Sequence record: NC_055733.1
Reading direction: 5' to 3' (one strand)
Length of the DNA stretch: 64,000 bases
Of this stretch, positions 49,392 through 64,000 are shown piece after piece (position 1 is the first letter of the stretch; each line of letters starts with the position of its first letter). Position numbers and translations under genes: made by a program. The notes below the pieces were generated by a model. It did not search any database. It was not told where the DNA came from and worked only from the letters and a program-made list of their open reading frames with translations.

Positions 49392-49882
49392 TCAACTGAT
49401 TTTTCCACAATTTTTATGCTCTTTACATTGCGTTGTTGTGTAGCCGTCAAACACAGAACGAGCACGATAATAGTCCTTAGCTGTGAATCCGTTCACACTA
49501 TCAACGTGAATGAAATTTTGCTTTTGTGACTCCAACATGTCGTCGTCATCGTCAACAATCACATAATTCTCACATTCTTGATGTTTGTTCAGCCACTCTT
49601 GAATCAACTCTCCGCGATTTTCACCAACAAGATCTCTTGTTTTGAAATCCTCATGTAAGCATTCGGGAGGGAATCCTGCCATAGCAAGTTGATCCTTCAC
49701 CATCTGCAAATCACATCCAAGTCTCCAAGTGCTACTGTATACCACTTTCAAACCGTAGTCAACGATTAGTTGGATAAAAGCTTTACAGCTCCTATGTCTA
49801 CCATTTGTCCGTATTTCAAGTAACTGCTATCGCTATGAAATACTCCGTCAACATCGAGAAACAATACACGGCATTTTTTCAT
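49392..49882 (-). CDS. HAD-family phosphatase (RNA-repair-like HAD type), apparent 1-nt deletion near 49775
   Basis: FLDVDGV motif I, VVYSSTWR, RGELI..WL and YVIVDD; ATGA-coupled to the methyltransferase. Confidence 0.8.
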
Positions 49883-51126
49883 ACGTCAAGAGTCCACATC
49901 GTATCTTTCAGCCAATCTGGATACTTTCTACCGTCGCTGGTGTCAGTCTCGTCTAATGTGTTGCAATAAGCGATTTGATTTTCGATTTGAGTTCGGTATT
50001 CCTCTCCCAAAATCTTCACCAATCGCTCTATGGCAGCGTTTCTATTGTCCAGCATATACTCACAAGCGTATATACGAGAAACGATTGTACCAGCGTTCTG
50101 GCCTGCTTCCAGCATACGTTTCACGATACCTTCGAGTATGTTACCGTCACCGCATGAAGGCTCAAAGAAAGTCGAACTGGAATCCGGATCATCTATGTCG
50201 GTATGATCCAACATCTGATTTACGAGTTCAATCGGAGTGAAAAACTCGGCAGTTTTCTTCTGACGATCTCTATCAATCTTATCGGTAAACATCCTGGTAT
50301 CACCAACGACTTGCGTTTTGTGACGCTTACCGCCATAGTAATCTTCGATTACTTCTGGAACCCTAGATTTGATATCAAGCATATCGAATTTTTCGAATAG
50401 CTCGTCATCTGTCCAACGCTTCGTCATGTCTACCCATGGAATTGCATGTAGCTCTCCACTATCTAGGTGAACATTCATCTTATACAGAGAAAGCATGAAT
50501 CTTGCAAAGTCCGTTTTCAGATAAGCAATAAAATTCTCTGCCTCTTCTAATGTCTTGAATGCGAAATTAGTGCCACGTTTAGGCATTTCCGTAGTTGGAA
50601 TGTAGTCAACTGGGAACATGGTAAAGAAGTCTGAATTAAAGCGTTTGCCAGCTTCTGGCGGGTGTCCTCTAACACTTGCTATAGTGACGTAGTGACTCGC
50701 ATCACTAACTTCACCAGAGCAGGCATGATGCGCTACAGACTGAATTGGAAATCTGTCATACAGTTTAACACACCAATCGCCAATCATATTCAGACGATTG
50801 ATAGGCAGTCTAGCGTCATAGTAGCCAGACACATTAATCAGACCAGCTTTCATTGTTTTGTCAATAACGGTTATACTAAGCGGAGTCAAAAACCCGGCTT
50901 TGAAAACGGCATTACCGTCAAACAGATGAACACTTGTTGTATATGTTTTCATGTTGTCGAGTAGTTCGGCAACTCGTTTTGTTTGTCGCGTTGGCTTTCT
51001 GTTAATAAAAGGTCCAGACGGATGCACAGCGATAGTAACATCACATTTCTTTACACCTAAGTTAACAAAGTCAACGTGCAAACCAGCACTATATGGCGGG
51101 TTTGCAATCATATAATCAAAGTGCAT
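49879..51126 (-). CDS. amino-DNA methyltransferase, circularly permuted (IV-TRD-X-I order)
   Basis: N-terminal IANPPY; C-terminal EFFTP, FEPSCGDGN and YACE. Confidence 0.85.
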   Translation of the reverse strand: MHFDYMIANPPYSAGLHVDFVNLGVKKCDVTIAVHPSGPFINRKPTRQTKRVAELLDNMKTYTTSVHLFDGNAVFKAGFLTPLSITVIDKTMKAGLINVSGYYDARLPINRLNMIGDWCVKLYDRFPIQSVAHHACSGEVSDASHYVTIASVRGHPPEAGKRFNSDFFTMFPVDYIPTTEMPKRGTNFAFKTLEEAENFIAYLKTDFARFMLSLYKMNVHLDSGELHAIPWVDMTKRWTDDELFEKFDMLDIKSRVPEVIEDYYGGKRHKTQVVGDTRMFTDKIDRDRQKKTAEFFTPIELVNQMLDHTDIDDPDSSSTFFEPSCGDGNILEGIVKRMLEAGQNAGTIVSRIYACEYMLDNRNAAIERLVKILGEEYRTQIENQIAYCNTLDETDTSDGRKYPDWLKDTMWTLDV

Positions 51127-51811
51127 GAGTGCTCAGACGTTCTCCGTATTCGCGATCCATGCCGTATTCTTTTGCTATCTTCATAATAGCGATGTTCATT
51201 TTTACCAGCTTATCACGTTCCACGATGTAATCATTCATCATTACATCGAGTTCATGAGATTGGCGACGTCTGATCTCCGATTCAATTTGTTTGATTTGAA
51301 GTTTCAAGATATCGGTAGAAACTTCTTTGATATCCTTTTCCACTTTAGCAATGATCTCCGGTTTCTGTTGCTTAGGCTGTTTTTGTAGCAGATCGATTTT
51401 GCGCTCAGGAATTCGAACGTTCATCTTGAATCCATATTCGGTGCGCTTTGCTGCGAAAGGAGAAAATGCTTTCATTTGTTCGATCATTTTGTCCACAATC
51501 GACTGACTACCACGGCTGAACTCAAACTCAACGATATTAACAACGATGCCTTCGCCAAGTTTCGTTACATTAACACCCATCAACTCCGGGCACTGACCGT
51601 CTTCAATATACGCGCCAAACAATTCGTTTAGATGCGCTTTGCTGAATGAGCGGCTACCGATCATCGATTCTGTATAGCGTCTGATGTTTTTGCGGAACTT
51701 CGCTGGGTCGATATCGACTTTAGTTCCAGCTGGCTTGGAATGGGTTTCGCAAGCAATATTCAGGAATTTGTACCACTGATTACGCGCAACTAGCTTCCGT
51801 TTTTCGTTCAT
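51116..51811 (-). CDS. hypothetical protein with C-terminal coiled coil (231 aa)
   Basis: SD GGAG. Confidence 0.7.
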   Translation of the reverse strand: MNEKRKLVARNQWYKFLNIACETHSKPAGTKVDIDPAKFRKNIRRYTESMIGSRSFSKAHLNELFGAYIEDGQCPELMGVNVTKLGEGIVVNIVEFEFSRGSQSIVDKMIEQMKAFSPFAAKRTEYGFKMNVRIPERKIDLLQKQPKQQKPEIIAKVEKDIKEVSTDILKLQIKQIESEIRRRQSHELDVMMNDYIVERDKLVKMNIAIMKIAKEYGMDREYGERLSTHAL

Positions 51812-51839: not shown

Positions 51840-52040
51840 TCAAATGTCAAACAGTGATGCAAGTCCTGGATGCTGTGGGAACTTCACATGTTTGGTGTTT
51901 TTGTCAATTGCCAATCCGGTTTGTTTAACAAACGCATCGAACTTTTCTTTAGAAGCAAAACGAACTTTGATCGTCCGTTTGCCACTCTTCATTTTCTCGA
52001 TTACGTGTTCCGGTGCGGCATCTGGGTTAACATATGCCAT
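51840..52040 (-). CDS. small protein related to the glycosyltransferase N-terminal domain (66 aa)
   Basis: IKVRFASKEKFDAFVKQTG..I..NTKHVKFP versus IEFEFDNNDDVAEFSKLAD..L..KTKSIWWP; TAATG coupling. Confidence 0.65.
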   Translation of the reverse strand: MAYVNPDAAPEHVIEKMKSGKRTIKVRFASKEKFDAFVKQTGLAIDKNTKHVKFPQHPGLASLFDI

Positions 52041-53239
52041 TATTCTTCCTCGTCGTTAGCGTCTTGTTCGGACGCTTTGATAGATGTTAGCACCATTCCG
52101 TATTCATTGCAACCTTCCGGAATAACATTTTTCAGTTTCAGACGATTAGAACGATACGGTGCATAGTCTACCCAGTGGTGCCAGCGACCGTTCATCCACT
52201 GCAATCTGGCAACGTCTGGATGCATGTCCACAATCATTTGCGACTTAGGCAGAGTACCTTCTTTTGAATAGAAAGCTTCTGTGTTACCGCCTGCCATCGC
52301 TTGAGTAACGAGTTTACCAGTCAAGAAAGCGTTATATTGAATCGTGCAATGACCGTCTTTCAAAACACGCAGGCTCAAATCGGTATCTTCGTTATAGCGA
52401 CCTCTCCAACGATACGGGATATCATTGAGAATCAACAGAGTGCTATAAATCCGACAGTTTTGAACGAACGGAGGCAACGACTCTTTCGGCACAGCAAAGA
52501 AGCGATAATGCGGACCAGCGATATAGACGTTTTCATAACGATCAACGTGATCTTCCATAGCACGGAAGATCGCGCCACTGTTAACGATTGTGCGCTTGTT
52601 TCCGTCAAGACGGAAGAAGTGTTGTTGGTTATCGTCCATTACCCAGTGACGCTTGAACCCCATTTTCATAGAGTGTTCCCAAGCAAAGTTACGAGCAGCG
52701 CCTGGACCCTTGCTTCGAGTGTTACCGAGATTATCAAATGTATCATATTCGTCAAGATATTTCTGATCAAGAATGATAACGGTCACATATTCATGATCAA
52801 CGCGGCTGTTATATTCTTCGAATTGAGATTCTTCTACAACGATATAATGCTTGACTTTCATACGCACCAAACTATCGGAAGTCAATCGCTTTTCCCATCG
52901 GGATTTTGATACGATGTAAATCGGATATTTTGGCTGATTCAAATCGGTGTAATCAGATACATACCGAATCACGGAGTAATCGTCTGGACCTTTCTTCGGC
53001 CACCAAATGCTCTTTGTCTTGTCACTTAACGGCAAGTCTGCGAGCTTAGAAAACTCGGCAACATCATCGTTATTATCGAACTCGAATTCAATCTCGGCAT
53101 AAGCGTCGATGATATCTTTCGGCTCATAGTGTGGCATTTGCTGCCAGTGGTCCCATGGATTATCTTCGTTGGCATATCGCTCATTGCGATAAATCAAATT
53201 GCCATCTAAGTCTCTTGTTTTTTCTACTTGTTTGCGCAT
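52040..53239 (-). CDS. GT-A fold glycosyltransferase (TET-associated/GREB1-like family)
   Basis: PIYIVSKSR, GAARN, HWVMDD, YSTLLILN, YNEDTDLSLR and GGNT. Confidence 0.8.
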   Translation of the reverse strand: MRKQVEKTRDLDGNLIYRNERYANEDNPWDHWQQMPHYEPKDIIDAYAEIEFEFDNNDDVAEFSKLADLPLSDKTKSIWWPKKGPDDYSVIRYVSDYTDLNQPKYPIYIVSKSRWEKRLTSDSLVRMKVKHYIVVEESQFEEYNSRVDHEYVTVIILDQKYLDEYDTFDNLGNTRSKGPGAARNFAWEHSMKMGFKRHWVMDDNQQHFFRLDGNKRTIVNSGAIFRAMEDHVDRYENVYIAGPHYRFFAVPKESLPPFVQNCRIYSTLLILNDIPYRWRGRYNEDTDLSLRVLKDGHCTIQYNAFLTGKLVTQAMAGGNTEAFYSKEGTLPKSQMIVDMHPDVARLQWMNGRWHHWVDYAPYRSNRLKLKNVIPEGCNEYGMVLTSIKASEQDANDEEE

Positions 53240-62424: not shown

Positions 62425-62622
62425 TTAGATTTTGAATTTCACACATTCCGACCCGTGAATCACAATCACAGTTTGACGACGACGCCAGAATTGGTACCAT
62501 TTCACCTTAGCATACTCGGCCATTTGCATTACCTCTTCAACTGACGCGGAAGTAACGGAAATTTCACCGTTTGGCAGAGTCATCATAACTTGATCATTCA
62601 CGATTTGCAGATTCATAATCAT
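62425..62622 (-). CDS. hypothetical protein (65 aa)
   Basis: SD GAGG. Confidence 0.6.
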   Translation of the reverse strand: MIMNLQIVNDQVMMTLPNGEISVTSASVEEVMQMAEYAKVKWYQFWRRRQTVIVIHGSECVKFKI

Positions 62623-62772
62623 TTCCTCAATTAAGTTGATTCAGAGCACTTGACAGGGCTTCGGCATACGCTATTGCAAATCCCATCATCATTATAAAGA
62701 ATGCGACTTTCATTTTGTTTGTCCGATTTCGTCTTGACGTGGACATCATATCAGGATGTCCACGAGTGTCAA

Positions 62773-63273
62773 TCAAATATCGAAAAGATTTTCTAAAGAA
62801 TTTTGCTTTACTATGCCACGAGCTTCTAACAGCCAGTCTGGATATTTTCTACCCTCGCTGATATCAGTGTGATCGATTGTGTTACAATACGCAATGTTAT
62901 TCAGCGCAATATCTCGGATTTCATCTGTCTGCCAATCACTGGTTAGATTGAGTTCAGCTAATAACGCTCCAATTCGAGCTATAATCGCTTCCCAGTTATC
63001 TCGCATATACTCACAAGCATAAACATCGGAAACAGCTTGGATCGCGTTGGACCGAGTTACGCCGGCTTTCTTGATCTTACGCTCGATAACTCTAACAACA
63101 AAATTACCGTCGCCAGCAGCAGGCTCAAACATGGTAACGCCGAGATTATCCACGTCCGATACCATATCAATCATATGATCAACGATATGAATAGGAGTAA
63201 AAACTTCGTCGGTTTTCTTTTGTCGATCACGACTGATTGGACCAGTAAACGTTCTCGCATCATCTTTTATCAT
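62773..63273 (-). CDS. SAM-binding half (motifs X, I-III) of a split amino-DNA methyltransferase
   Basis: RDRQKKTDEVFTP, FEPAAGDGN, YACEYM and IAYCNT...GRKYPDWL; paralogous to the C-terminal third of 49879-51126. Confidence 0.85.
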   Translation of the reverse strand: MIKDDARTFTGPISRDRQKKTDEVFTPIHIVDHMIDMVSDVDNLGVTMFEPAAGDGNFVVRVIERKIKKAGVTRSNAIQAVSDVYACEYMRDNWEAIIARIGALLAELNLTSDWQTDEIRDIALNNIAYCNTIDHTDISEGRKYPDWLLEARGIVKQNSLENLFDI

Positions 63274-63285
63274 AATTATCTCCAA

Positions 63286-63308
63286 AGAAAAAGGGGCCGC
63301 AGCCCCTT
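63286..63308 (-). terminator. intrinsic terminator-like hairpin between the two methyltransferase halves
   Basis: aaggggc-tgcg-gcccctt-ttt. Confidence 0.7.
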
Positions 63309-63312
63309 TATA

Positions 63313-63999
63313 TTATCGTACCAATTCAGCAAAATCAACCGGAATTGCATTTCTTTGTTCTTCGGTGATGCCAAAATGGTTGAACAACTTTTCATCGTCC
63401 CAAGACTGGGTGAAATCAAGCCACGGAATGGATTTCAACTCACCTCGGTGTAGATTTCCGTTCATTTTCAGCGTTGCCAGACACGAGCGAAAAAAGAGTG
63501 TTTTGGTATACGATAGGAAATTGTCTGCCTCTTCCTTGGTAGAAAATTCCCAAGATAACCAGCTATTGTTAGTCAGTCTTGAATCCGATACTACCGCATT
63601 TGTAAATCGTTTCCATAGAGTACATACGAACCATTTTCCATTTTTGTATTCCGGTTCGTTATCTCCATTCATATACTTATGATCATCAACGCTATCCGCG
63701 AACGTGATATTATAAAATGGAAGAAGCCATTCGCCGTACATGTTTACTTGATCTATCGTTTCGGCTGTGTATTTTCCATGTTTTGCAATAACTCGAACGC
63801 GATCCAACTTCGTGAGCTTATTGATATAGGTAATTCCAACCGGAGACGAAATATCAGCAGAGAAACAATCAAATCCGATATATTCCCATGAGCAGTCATA
63901 TTTGGAAACATATGTTAGAAATGCCTTGGCATCATTAGAACGACGAACTTCCTTTCTGTTTGTGATTGTGCTACACGGATGAATAGCAACAACGCGATC
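63313..63999 (-). CDS. catalytic/TRD half of the split methyltransferase (5' end beyond the window)
   Basis: Frame open to the window edge: DRVVAIHPCSTITNRK...FSTKEEADNFLSYTKT...LKMNGNLHRGELKSIPWLDFTQSWDDEKLF; paralogous to the N-terminal two-thirds of 49879-51126. Confidence 0.82.
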   Translation of the reverse strand, partial: DRVVAIHPCSTITNRKEVRRSNDAKAFLTYVSKYDCSWEYIGFDCFSADISSPVGITYINKLTKLDRVRVIAKHGKYTAETIDQVNMYGEWLLPFYNITFADSVDDHKYMNGDNEPEYKNGKWFVCTLWKRFTNAVVSDSRLTNNSWLSWEFSTKEEADNFLSYTKTLFFRSCLATLKMNGNLHRGELKSIPWLDFTQSWDDEKLFNHFGITEEQRNAIPVDFAELVR

Positions 64000-64000
64000 T

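Follow-up and report, generated by a model that had tools for sequence, protein, structure and literature searches.

The DNA methyltransferases, with their classes alpha, beta and gamma, are the textbook example of circular permutation, and arguments on the route leading to it have drawn mostly on old and strongly diverged families. Here we analyse two regions of Aeromonas phage Ah1 (MG250483.1, RefSeq record NC_055733.1; Straboviridae, Cinqassovirus), in which related methyltransferase-like proteins are encoded once as a single chain and once by two genes. The first region holds the fused gene Ah1_00077, the second a cassette of a large gene, Ah1_00104, and a small gene, Ah1_00103. The stretch of DNA that was analysed, the window, comprises bases 1-64000 of the record, and window and record coordinates are identical. 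In MG250483.1 all genes of both regions are annotated as 'hypothetical protein'; RefSeq has the label 'DNA methyltransferase' on one gene of the second region (62773-64950). The explanation that we consider likely as a whole is that Ah1_00077 encodes a probably active permuted methyltransferase which arose by gene fusion, and that the cassette is its unfused, older two-subunit relative.

The models of DNA methyltransferase permutation, as summarised in PMC3320104, are permutation by duplication (Jeltsch 1999) and by fission-fusion or cut-and-paste (Bujnicki 2002). The states that they predict according to this summary, i.e. the canonical form, a redundant N-terminal half (N-half) with decay of the original one, separate halves in either order of the genes, and the permutant formed by fusion, are all extant in the Ah1 family. 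The redundant state consists here of two genes (or of an N-terminal fusion, as in the relative P0067) and not of one tandem in-frame duplicate, and the route suggested for the family mixes features of both models. The Ah1 family would be a young, traceable case of permutation by gene fusion within one well-supported clade, and with canonical, redundant, split and fused forms at hand the route could be tested experimentally, by letting halves complement each other and by determining methylation motifs. In the full-text literature that was searched we found no description of a permuted gamma-lineage family or of the large-plus-small cassette.

The best structural and sequence matches of both Ah1 loci are gamma-class enzymes of the TaqI/Eco57I type (M.TaqI, CamA, BREX PglX; PF02384, PF07669). 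They have in common FxTP, (D/E)PxxGxG and NPPY, and a recognition domain that follows the catalytic strands; the unpermuted relatives P0027 and P0009 are ordinary members of this type. In the gamma class motifs X and I-VIII precede the recognition domain. The Ah1 proteins deviate from this order: the fused protein has its N-half (motifs X, I-III) at the C-terminus, and the cassette encodes the N-half separately, while the large protein keeps a decayed copy of it; the Pfam scores are just below threshold. The order found in Ah1_00077 (IV, recognition domain, X, I-III) is formally that of the beta class (M.PvuII, M.RsrI, EcoP15I Mod type; PF01555), whose defining succession is IV-VIII, recognition domain, X, I-III (PMC7544214). 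In Ah1_00077, however, both the motifs and the recognition domain are gamma-type. Ah1_00077 had no match to the beta-class family PF01555 (N6_N4_Mtase) in Pfam at E<=1, and all its sequence and structure matches are gamma-type, which rules out beta-class membership by sequence. Judged from these comparisons, Ah1_00077 belongs to the gamma lineage of amino-methyltransferases (TaqI/Eco57I-like) and is a genuine circular permutant, and its beta-type order is of independent, much younger origin.

The permuted gene and its fusion joint

Ah1_00077 (49879..51126, complementary strand, as are all features described below unless stated otherwise) is one open reading frame (ORF) of 415 amino acids, matching PHROG 11371 with an E value of 1e-203. 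The chain opens at motif IV (MHFDYMIANPPY). Secondary structure, Foldseek and the match to P0027 place strand beta4 with motif IV (NPPY, residues 9-12, nt 51091-51102), beta5-beta7 and a TaqI-like recognition domain, ending in IEDYY, in residues 1-264 (50335..51126). Residues 265-285 (50272..50334) form the fusion joint and linker. The rest of the chain, residues 286-415 (49882..50271), contains motif X (FFTP, residues 295-298, nt 50233-50244), motif I (EPSCGDGN, residues 322-329, nt 50140-50163), motif II (YACEYM, residues 353-358, nt 50053-50070), motif III (IAYCNTLD, residues 385-392, nt 49951-49974) and a conserved GRKYPDWL tail. An earlier note, made from the sequence of the window, had described NPPY and the recognition domain as coming first and FFTP and EPSCGDGN as coming last in this region; all of these are there, in a single ORF.

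The same note took the motifs for gamma-class ones in permuted order, and this is confirmed by comparison with the 382-amino-acid unpermuted relative P0027. In BLASTP residues 1-249 of Ah1_00077 align with residues 115-359 of P0027 (E 9e-29, 31% identity) and residues 283-392 with residues 4-114 (E 6e-10), two blocks whose order is exchanged. The break lies precisely where motif III gives way to the Met-Lys-Phe-Asp with which beta4 begins. The family profile matches the solved gamma enzymes PacII M, BseCI, HsdM and TaqI, and in every one of these motifs X and I precede NPPY. The cofactor motifs X (FxTP), I ((D/E)PxxGxG), II (acid after beta2) and III are all intact in the C-terminal part, which matches Pfam N6_Mtase (residues 286-341, E 5.5e-4), PHROG 21201 'DNA methyltransferase' (E 1.8e-42) and, by PDB profiles, motifs X-I of PacII M, BseCI and TaqI. 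NCBIfam matches (Alw26I-family, MADS2, HsdM) were weak, partial and far under their cutoffs, and were left out of the naming.

The AlphaFold2 model of the fused protein, built from a 61-sequence alignment, is a single compact fold (predicted local distance difference test, pLDDT, 93.2; predicted template modelling score, pTM, 0.90). Its strands follow the order beta4 (residues 3-8), beta5, beta6, beta7, recognition domain, linker 265-285, motif-X helices, beta1 (320-322), beta2 (352-356) and beta3 (385-387); the linker (pLDDT 55-69) is the only low-confidence stretch. The top Foldseek matches of the model are CamA, PglX and M.TaqI, all gamma-class, with E values from 6.5e-4 to 2.6e-3 for CamA and TaqI. 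Because all cofactor and catalytic motifs are present and the model is a confident single fold, Ah1_00077 most likely methylates adenine at N6; it is probably a single-chain S-adenosylmethionine (SAM)-dependent DNA N6-adenine methyltransferase of the TaqI/Eco57I-like lineage. In such an enzyme the motif-X helix and beta1-beta3, coming after the flexible linker, would pack back on beta4 and complete the cofactor site, and the recognition domain would set the sequence in which adenine N6 is methylated, the methylation protecting or marking phage DNA.

How the permutation came about can be read from the joint, which we regard as decisive. Free large or half proteins of the family end in IPDYY, and free small proteins begin with M...ARTFT...RERQKKT..FTP. 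In the fused proteins IEDYY is followed by about 11 residues and then by D-T-R-x-F-T...RDRQKKT..FFTP, that is, the usual C-terminus of a large protein (DYY) is joined by a bridge to the former N-terminal segment of a small protein. Both former termini are kept, therefore the comparison points to end-to-end, in-frame fusion of a gene for motif IV and the recognition domain with a downstream gene for motifs X-I-II-III, and it is by such an end-to-end gene fusion that the permutation of Ah1_00077, as judged from the aligned termini, arose.

The large-plus-small cassette

The window contains the 3' part of the large gene Ah1_00104 (63313..64000, residues 317-545), an ORF open at the window edge. 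In the full record the gene extends to 64950 and encodes 545 amino acids (63313-64950), about 290 of them ahead of motif IV. The earlier note had expected an NPPY past base 64000; motif IV does exist there, about 45 nt beyond the window end, in the form NPPF (residues 300-303, record 64042-64053). Thus (N/D)PP(Y/F) on beta4 is present in both the fused and the large protein, and it is invariant in the alignments. Residues ~208-292 of Ah1_00104 read like a methyltransferase N-half in which the glycine loop is replaced by VVEAVEF (degenerate motif I VLVVEAVEF, record 64225-64251) and the motif-II acid by Ser/Thr. The motif order of the large protein is that of the gamma class, but its motif I is degenerate and intact cofactor motifs are absent. 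Its AlphaFold2 model (pLDDT 87, pTM 0.73; pLDDT >90 over residues 220-290) consists of an N-terminal alpha/beta domain (22-116), long helices and a complete beta1-beta7 Rossmann fold in canonical order. The best Foldseek match is full-length M.TaqI (E 1.4e-6, template modelling (TM) score up to 0.51 over ~410 columns), and small complete methyltransferases such as Dim1 and KsgA are matched as well. The complete Rossmann fold and the full-length match to M.TaqI mean that the large protein is not a half. A hidden Markov model of the Ah1-type pseudo-half matches the N-parts of degenerate canonical-order proteins with E values down to 1e-10, therefore the pseudo-half is inherited and no chance resemblance.

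The small gene Ah1_00103 (62773..63273, 166 amino acids) encodes a free-standing cofactor-binding half, identified by its ORF, by BLASTP, by motif coordinates and by PHROG 21201 (E 1.4e-76). Its motifs X-I-II-III are all intact (VFTP, EPAAGDGN, YACEYM, IAYCNTID). The blocks that the earlier note saw shared between the two loci reflect a similarity far above chance: in BLASTP Ah1_00077 is 31% identical with Ah1_00104 over 255 amino acids (E 1e-32) and 49% identical with Ah1_00103 over 146 amino acids (E 2e-38). The recognition regions are 31% identical, and the suggestion that they could give two specificities is plausible. The description of 62773-64000 as the same two halves in the same order with a hairpin between them was right as to the two genes, their order and the hairpin; the large gene is more than the expected half, with 545 amino acids and a Rossmann fold of its own. 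Exactly one motif set distributed over two adjacent genes is found in two other loci of the family (L012 and L006, see below) and not in the Ah1 cassette, where the large protein has its degenerate N-half.

Residues 24-120 of Ah1_00104 weakly match Pfam T5orf172 (E 0.0021, 19.0 bits vs. a cutoff of 20). The residues Y24, Y28, K45, G47, R57, H91 and E111 (in E111-W-F) are invariant across six relatives, and the predicted elements of the N-domain are strand 22-27, helix 29-39, strand 41-49, helix 54-62, strand 72-78 and helix 87-96 (AlphaFold2). Ah1_00104 thus shows the catalytic pattern of GIY-YIG nucleases, Tyr...Tyr, (K/Y)(I/V)G, Arg, His and Glu on a beta-beta-alpha-alpha-beta core. The large proteins of the phages phi-ST2, PSD9 and KpV477 have a LEM-3_GIY-YIG domain with 37-59 bits, over the Pfam cutoff of 27, and their pseudo-half and IV-recognition part are homologous to those of the Ah1-type proteins (hhalign 99.6%, E 1e-24). 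Comparison of the T5orf172-type with the LEM-3-type N-domains of these two kinds of large protein by hhalign gave no alignment, so a common origin of the N-domains is unsupported.

The two cassette genes are separated by a 39-nt gap with a terminator-like hairpin (63290..63309; 8-bp GC-rich stem and T-run), followed by GGAG and the ATG at 63273. Taken alone the hairpin is unexceptional (1 found vs. 0.9 expected, fold z-score -1.6). It is kept in the phage avDM12-TAAL, and GC-rich intergenic hairpins of differing sequence occur in three diverged large-plus-small loci (L014 3841-3913, L015 1908-2014 and window 63274-63312); in the L007 locus, phi-ST2 and PSD9 the large and small genes abut or overlap. 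The sole argument for a function of the hairpin is this recurrence at the same position in relatives. It may set the ratio of the large and small products.

The distribution of the two loci is different. The fused gene is intact in more than 25 records of Aeromonas T4-like phages, including Aeh1, PX29, phiAS5, 65 and CC2; the split cassette is present in only two sequenced phages, Ah1 and avDM12-TAAL, and has distant counterparts in T4-like phages of Vibrio, Klebsiella and Shigella. The cassette site, which lies between the homologues of Ah1_00102 and Ah1_00105 (flanks 62616-62773 and record 64950-65058), is hypervariable: it is empty in PX29 (228 nt), it holds an unrelated 242-amino-acid ORF without Pfam or PHROG match in Aeh1, and in Ah1 and avDM12-TAAL it is occupied by the two-gene cassette of 2.2 kb. 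Such sporadic presence and absence at one site among close relatives is what is seen with homing endonucleases. Being an indel that Aeh1 and PX29 lack at this variable site, the cassette was more likely acquired horizontally than duplicated locally. Thus, of the earlier note's proposal of two paralogues in one genome, the cassette does stand as an unfused relative of the same gene order and the same clade (support 100/99), and recent duplication within the genome does not. The Philippine isolate avDM12-TAAL and the Russian Ah1 share the same stop, hairpin, ribosome-binding site and start in the gap, and their codon differences, 21 synonymous vs. 9 nonsynonymous in the large gene and 5 vs. 1 in the small one, indicate that both genes are under purifying selection.

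Genes in pieces are familiar from T4-like phages, e.g. the nrdA of Aeh1 is split by mobE. As there, an enzyme would have to be reassembled from the products of two adjacent genes, and the L006 locus has an extra ORF between its halves; the Ah1 pair differs in that no endonuclease gene stands between the genes and the nuclease domain is inside the large protein. Like Type IIG/IIL enzymes (MmeI, Eco57I), the Ah1 large subunit unites in a single polypeptide a nuclease domain, a methyltransferase fold of gamma type and a recognition domain. It departs from that type in that its predicted nuclease is GIY-YIG/T5orf172-type and not PD-(D/E)xK, the cofactor motifs of the large chain are decayed, and the intact half is encoded apart. 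T5orf172 is described as a GIY-YIG subfamily among the homing endonucleases of phages, its DNA-binding domains being modular (PMC10448857). GIY-YIG and T5orf172 homing endonucleases (T4 Seg proteins, I-TevI, the T5orf172 genes of ICP1; PMC10448857) resemble the Ah1 large protein in having an N-terminal nuclease, a linker and a modular DNA-binding part, and resemble the cassette in their sporadic presence at a variable site of T4-like genomes. The DNA-binding part of the Ah1 protein differs from theirs in being a whole methyltransferase-like fold with invariant NPPY/F, and the Ah1 cassette has an obligatory small partner gene besides.

Taken together, Ah1_00104 and Ah1_00103 most likely encode a two-subunit nuclease-methyltransferase, whose heteromeric assembly and nuclease activity are predicted from the encoded domains. 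SAM would be bound by the small subunit, whereas flipping of the base, recognition of the DNA and its cleavage would be tasks of the large one. That the small protein completes the fold of the large one is our best guess, because its close relatives must complete half-proteins that lack the N-half. More tentatively, the cassette may be an undescribed kind of phage nuclease-methyltransferase, in which a GIY-YIG/T5orf172 nuclease is aimed by a methyltransferase reader with decayed cofactor site and a separately encoded half-Rossmann subunit does the switching, protecting or completing, by displacing the decayed half of the large protein or by pairing with it. If this is true, Ah1_00077 would be what remained once the nuclease and the decayed half had been shed, and the family would be the first natural series with every intermediate of circular permutation. 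The large-plus-small cassette is a widespread, unstudied phage module that combines a predicted nuclease domain with a methyltransferase-like reader whose cofactor site has decayed. To learn whether it attacks host DNA, keeps out rival phages, or serves homing or self-protection would inform on phage-host and phage-phage conflict, and the module might yield a new sequence-specific enzyme.

Family relationships and alternative explanations

An exhaustive phmmer search of 1.84 billion representatives (E<=1e-3) found 1653 relatives; the counts of architectures given here refer to the best 150 of them. A word-indexed protein search returned only the query for the large protein and 10 matches each for the fused and the small protein. 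Among the best 150 there are 9 fused permutants, 41 proteins of 260-320 amino acids that start at motif IV, and 55 canonical-order proteins of 340-470 amino acids, besides forms of 500-650 amino acids and giants of 1100-1400 (Eco57I-type). Some canonical-order relatives have an intact motif I (P0027, P0064, P0134, P0039), and many have a degenerate N-half of the 'ILVLFNLEF' type, as in the Ah1 large protein. Three metagenomic single-chain proteins (P0067, P0083, P0094) combine an intact X-I-III half, about 150 residues, a degenerate N-half, and NPPY with the recognition domain; P0113 of the same clade has lost the decayed half, and P0120 has the decayed half only.

The large-then-small pair was found at eight independent loci: Ah1, avDM12-TAAL, the metagenomic loci L007, L014 and L015, phi-ST2, PSD9 and KpV477. 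The genes overlap in Vibrio phage phi-ST2 (552 + 167 amino acids) and Shigella phage PSD9 (499 + 160). In Klebsiella phage KpV477 (L003 1520-3005) the large gene is broken into pieces of 381 and 110 amino acids, the latter lying between the 381-residue piece and the 153-amino-acid small protein; it is intact in the related PKO111 as a 495-amino-acid GIY-YIG protein (BFVD), and the break in KpV477 is probably a frameshift or decay. The phi-ST2 pair (L004 3476-5159) is situated directly upstream of genes with the annotations 6-pyruvoyl-tetrahydropterin synthase (QueD-like) and QueC, and such genes are part of 7-deazaguanine DNA modification. There are also clean splits. In L012 the small gene comes first and overlaps, stop with start, the gene of a 261-amino-acid protein starting at motif IV; in the metagenomic L006 a 262-amino-acid protein starting at motif IV is followed by a 244-amino-acid ORF and then by the small gene. 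This ORF (1543-2277) has, by eye, an HNH-like D-x-D-H...N-L...N motif and no Pfam or PHROG match, and could be a homing endonuclease that split, or separates, the two halves. A Met exactly 8 residues before the Asn of NPPY is present in 42 of 90 longer relatives; among the 50 proteins beginning at motif IV it is the start codon in 24, Ah1_00077 (51124-51126) being one of them. It could be a ready-made internal start that eased splitting, or a source of mis-called short metagenomic ORFs.

In the tree of the IV-recognition module seven fused proteins, five large subunits (including that of Ah1) and two stand-alone halves form one clade (100/99), within which four large subunits group together (98/94). 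An independent fused form, P0099, is placed elsewhere. In the tree of the X-I-III module, rooted on canonical N-halves, the Aeh1-type fused proteins are united by their C-parts in a clade (100/99). Its neighbours are the free small subunits of Ah1, L006, L007 and L012, and other free small subunits surround it. The pseudo-half is common to the canonical outgroups, therefore we infer that the large-plus-small state is the older one in the clade, and that the N-terminally shortened and fused states are derived. A canonical gene would have gained an extra, trans-acting N-half, its original N-half would then have decayed and been deleted, and in the end the two genes would have fused end to end. 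The sequence comparisons favour this route over simple fission and refusion.

The latter was the scenario of the earlier note: a gamma-class gene was split into clean halves kept as a heterodimer, a paralogue was re-fused in the opposite order, and the two Ah1 loci are snapshots of before and after. The permutation and the fusion are real, both termini are kept at the joint, clean two-half splits in both gene orders (L012, L006) occur in the same clade, and the conserved Met before NPPY would ease fission. We nevertheless regard this scenario as improbable for Ah1, where the large gene is not a half and has a complete fold with degenerate motif I and a nuclease-like domain. The two loci share only 31% and 49% identity, the cassette indel is missing from Aeh1 and PX29 and is thus no local duplicate, and the pseudo-half region shared with the canonical-order outgroups makes the pseudo-half state ancestral in the clade. 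A sequencing error or pseudogene decay as the source of the split, or an assembly misjoin as that of the fused gene, is scarcely credible. Gene decay does occur in this region, the HAD gene next door being truly broken, and the large gene of KpV477 is an example from the family itself. However, the gap layout is identical in an independent isolate from another country that differs mostly by synonymous changes, the two-gene layout recurs in distant phages and metagenomes, and the fused form, with its confident fold, is intact in all the records mentioned above; these findings largely refute an artefact.

A more serious competitor, which we rate as possible but still doubtful, sees in the cassette mainly a mobile or selfish nuclease (homing- or restriction-like), with the methyltransferase part as sequence reader and the small protein as an accessory, e.g. 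for SAM-dependent control or for protective methylation together with another partner. The build of the large protein (GIY-YIG-superfamily domain at the N-terminus, linker, DNA-recognition module) is that of the homing endonucleases described above, its distribution is sporadic and its site variable, its cofactor motifs are decayed while the nuclease-type residues are invariant, and its AlphaFold2 model has no vacant beta1-beta3 position. A mere DNA-binding scaffold, on the other hand, would not need the NPPY/NPPF that is invariant in all large proteins. Moreover, the small gene is always immediately downstream and is under purifying selection, and close relatives of the small protein pair with proteins lacking the N-half and occur in the fused enzyme, where completion of the fold is required. 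Rossmann enzymes with NPPY/NPPF include methylases of adenines in rRNA and of glutamines in proteins, and the Ah1 proteins might accordingly modify RNA, protein or a small molecule and not DNA. Foldseek finds Dim1/KsgA and METTL5 with the model of the large protein, METTL5 is also found by sequence for the NPPY strand, and no Pfam DNA-methylase model is over threshold. But 320-410 columns align with M.TaqI and CamA, including the DNA-recognition domains, the nearest sequence families are Eco57I, N6_Mtase, PacII M, BseCI and type I HsdM, the relatives include the Eco57I-type giants, and the large proteins are fused to DNA nuclease domains. A target other than DNA is therefore very unlikely.

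Several observations weigh against the explanation that we favour, i.e. an active permutant born of gene fusion and an older, unfused two-subunit relative. The N6_Mtase score of Ah1_00077 is 19.8 bits, just under the gathering score of 20.4, and that of the small protein is 17.6 bits; Eco57I is weak in relatives. The Foldseek TM-scores of the fused model are low (0.36) and give no positive proof of fold identity. This is expected, because a sequential aligner is unable to follow a permutation, and the case for permutation was therefore rested on the two-block BLASTP and profile matches. The support for the predicted packing of the C-terminal half on beta4 consists of the pTM and pLDDT of the model. 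As to the cassette, only one of six Ah1-type large proteins has even a weak T5orf172 match in Pfam, and in the AlphaFold2 model of Ah1_00104 the pseudo-half already fills the beta1-beta3 position, so that the small subunit would have to displace it or bind elsewhere. In the IV-recognition tree the monophyly of the fused proteins is moderately supported (76/96), and in the small-module tree the 65-type fused C-parts (P0006, P0012) are basal, which makes any number and direction of fusion events tentative.

Neighbouring genes

In the Aeh1-like phages examined, Ah1 and phiAS5, the fused gene belongs to a conserved block consisting of a TAGT (TET-associated glycosyltransferase) gene, a 66-amino-acid gene, a ~231-amino-acid gene, the methyltransferase and a HAD gene. 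The TAGT gene of Ah1 (52040-53239; 399 amino acids, Pfam E 9e-45) is two genes upstream of Ah1_00077. PMC8056088, following Iyer et al. 2013, lists its Aeh1 homologue as a glucosyl transferase presumed to modify DNA, with an unknown base as target. The immediate upstream neighbour, Ah1_00078 (51116-51811), was considered as the missing N-terminal extension of the large subunit and rejected, as it has no similarity to it (best E 0.37).

Directly downstream of Ah1_00077 the HAD-family (HAD_SAK_2) gene is present in Ah1 as two ORFs (49766-49882 and 49392-49751), which correspond to residues 3-35 (94% identity) and 43-160 (83% identity) of the intact 161-amino-acid ORF0214 of phiAS5. This looks like a real disrupted gene, unlike the conserved split of the methyltransferase. 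At the second locus a near-consensus sigma-70-type promoter (62745-62772; TTGACA, 16 nt, TATGAT, 11 of 12 matches, with TG before the -10 element) is located directly past the stop of the small gene and ahead of the next genes.

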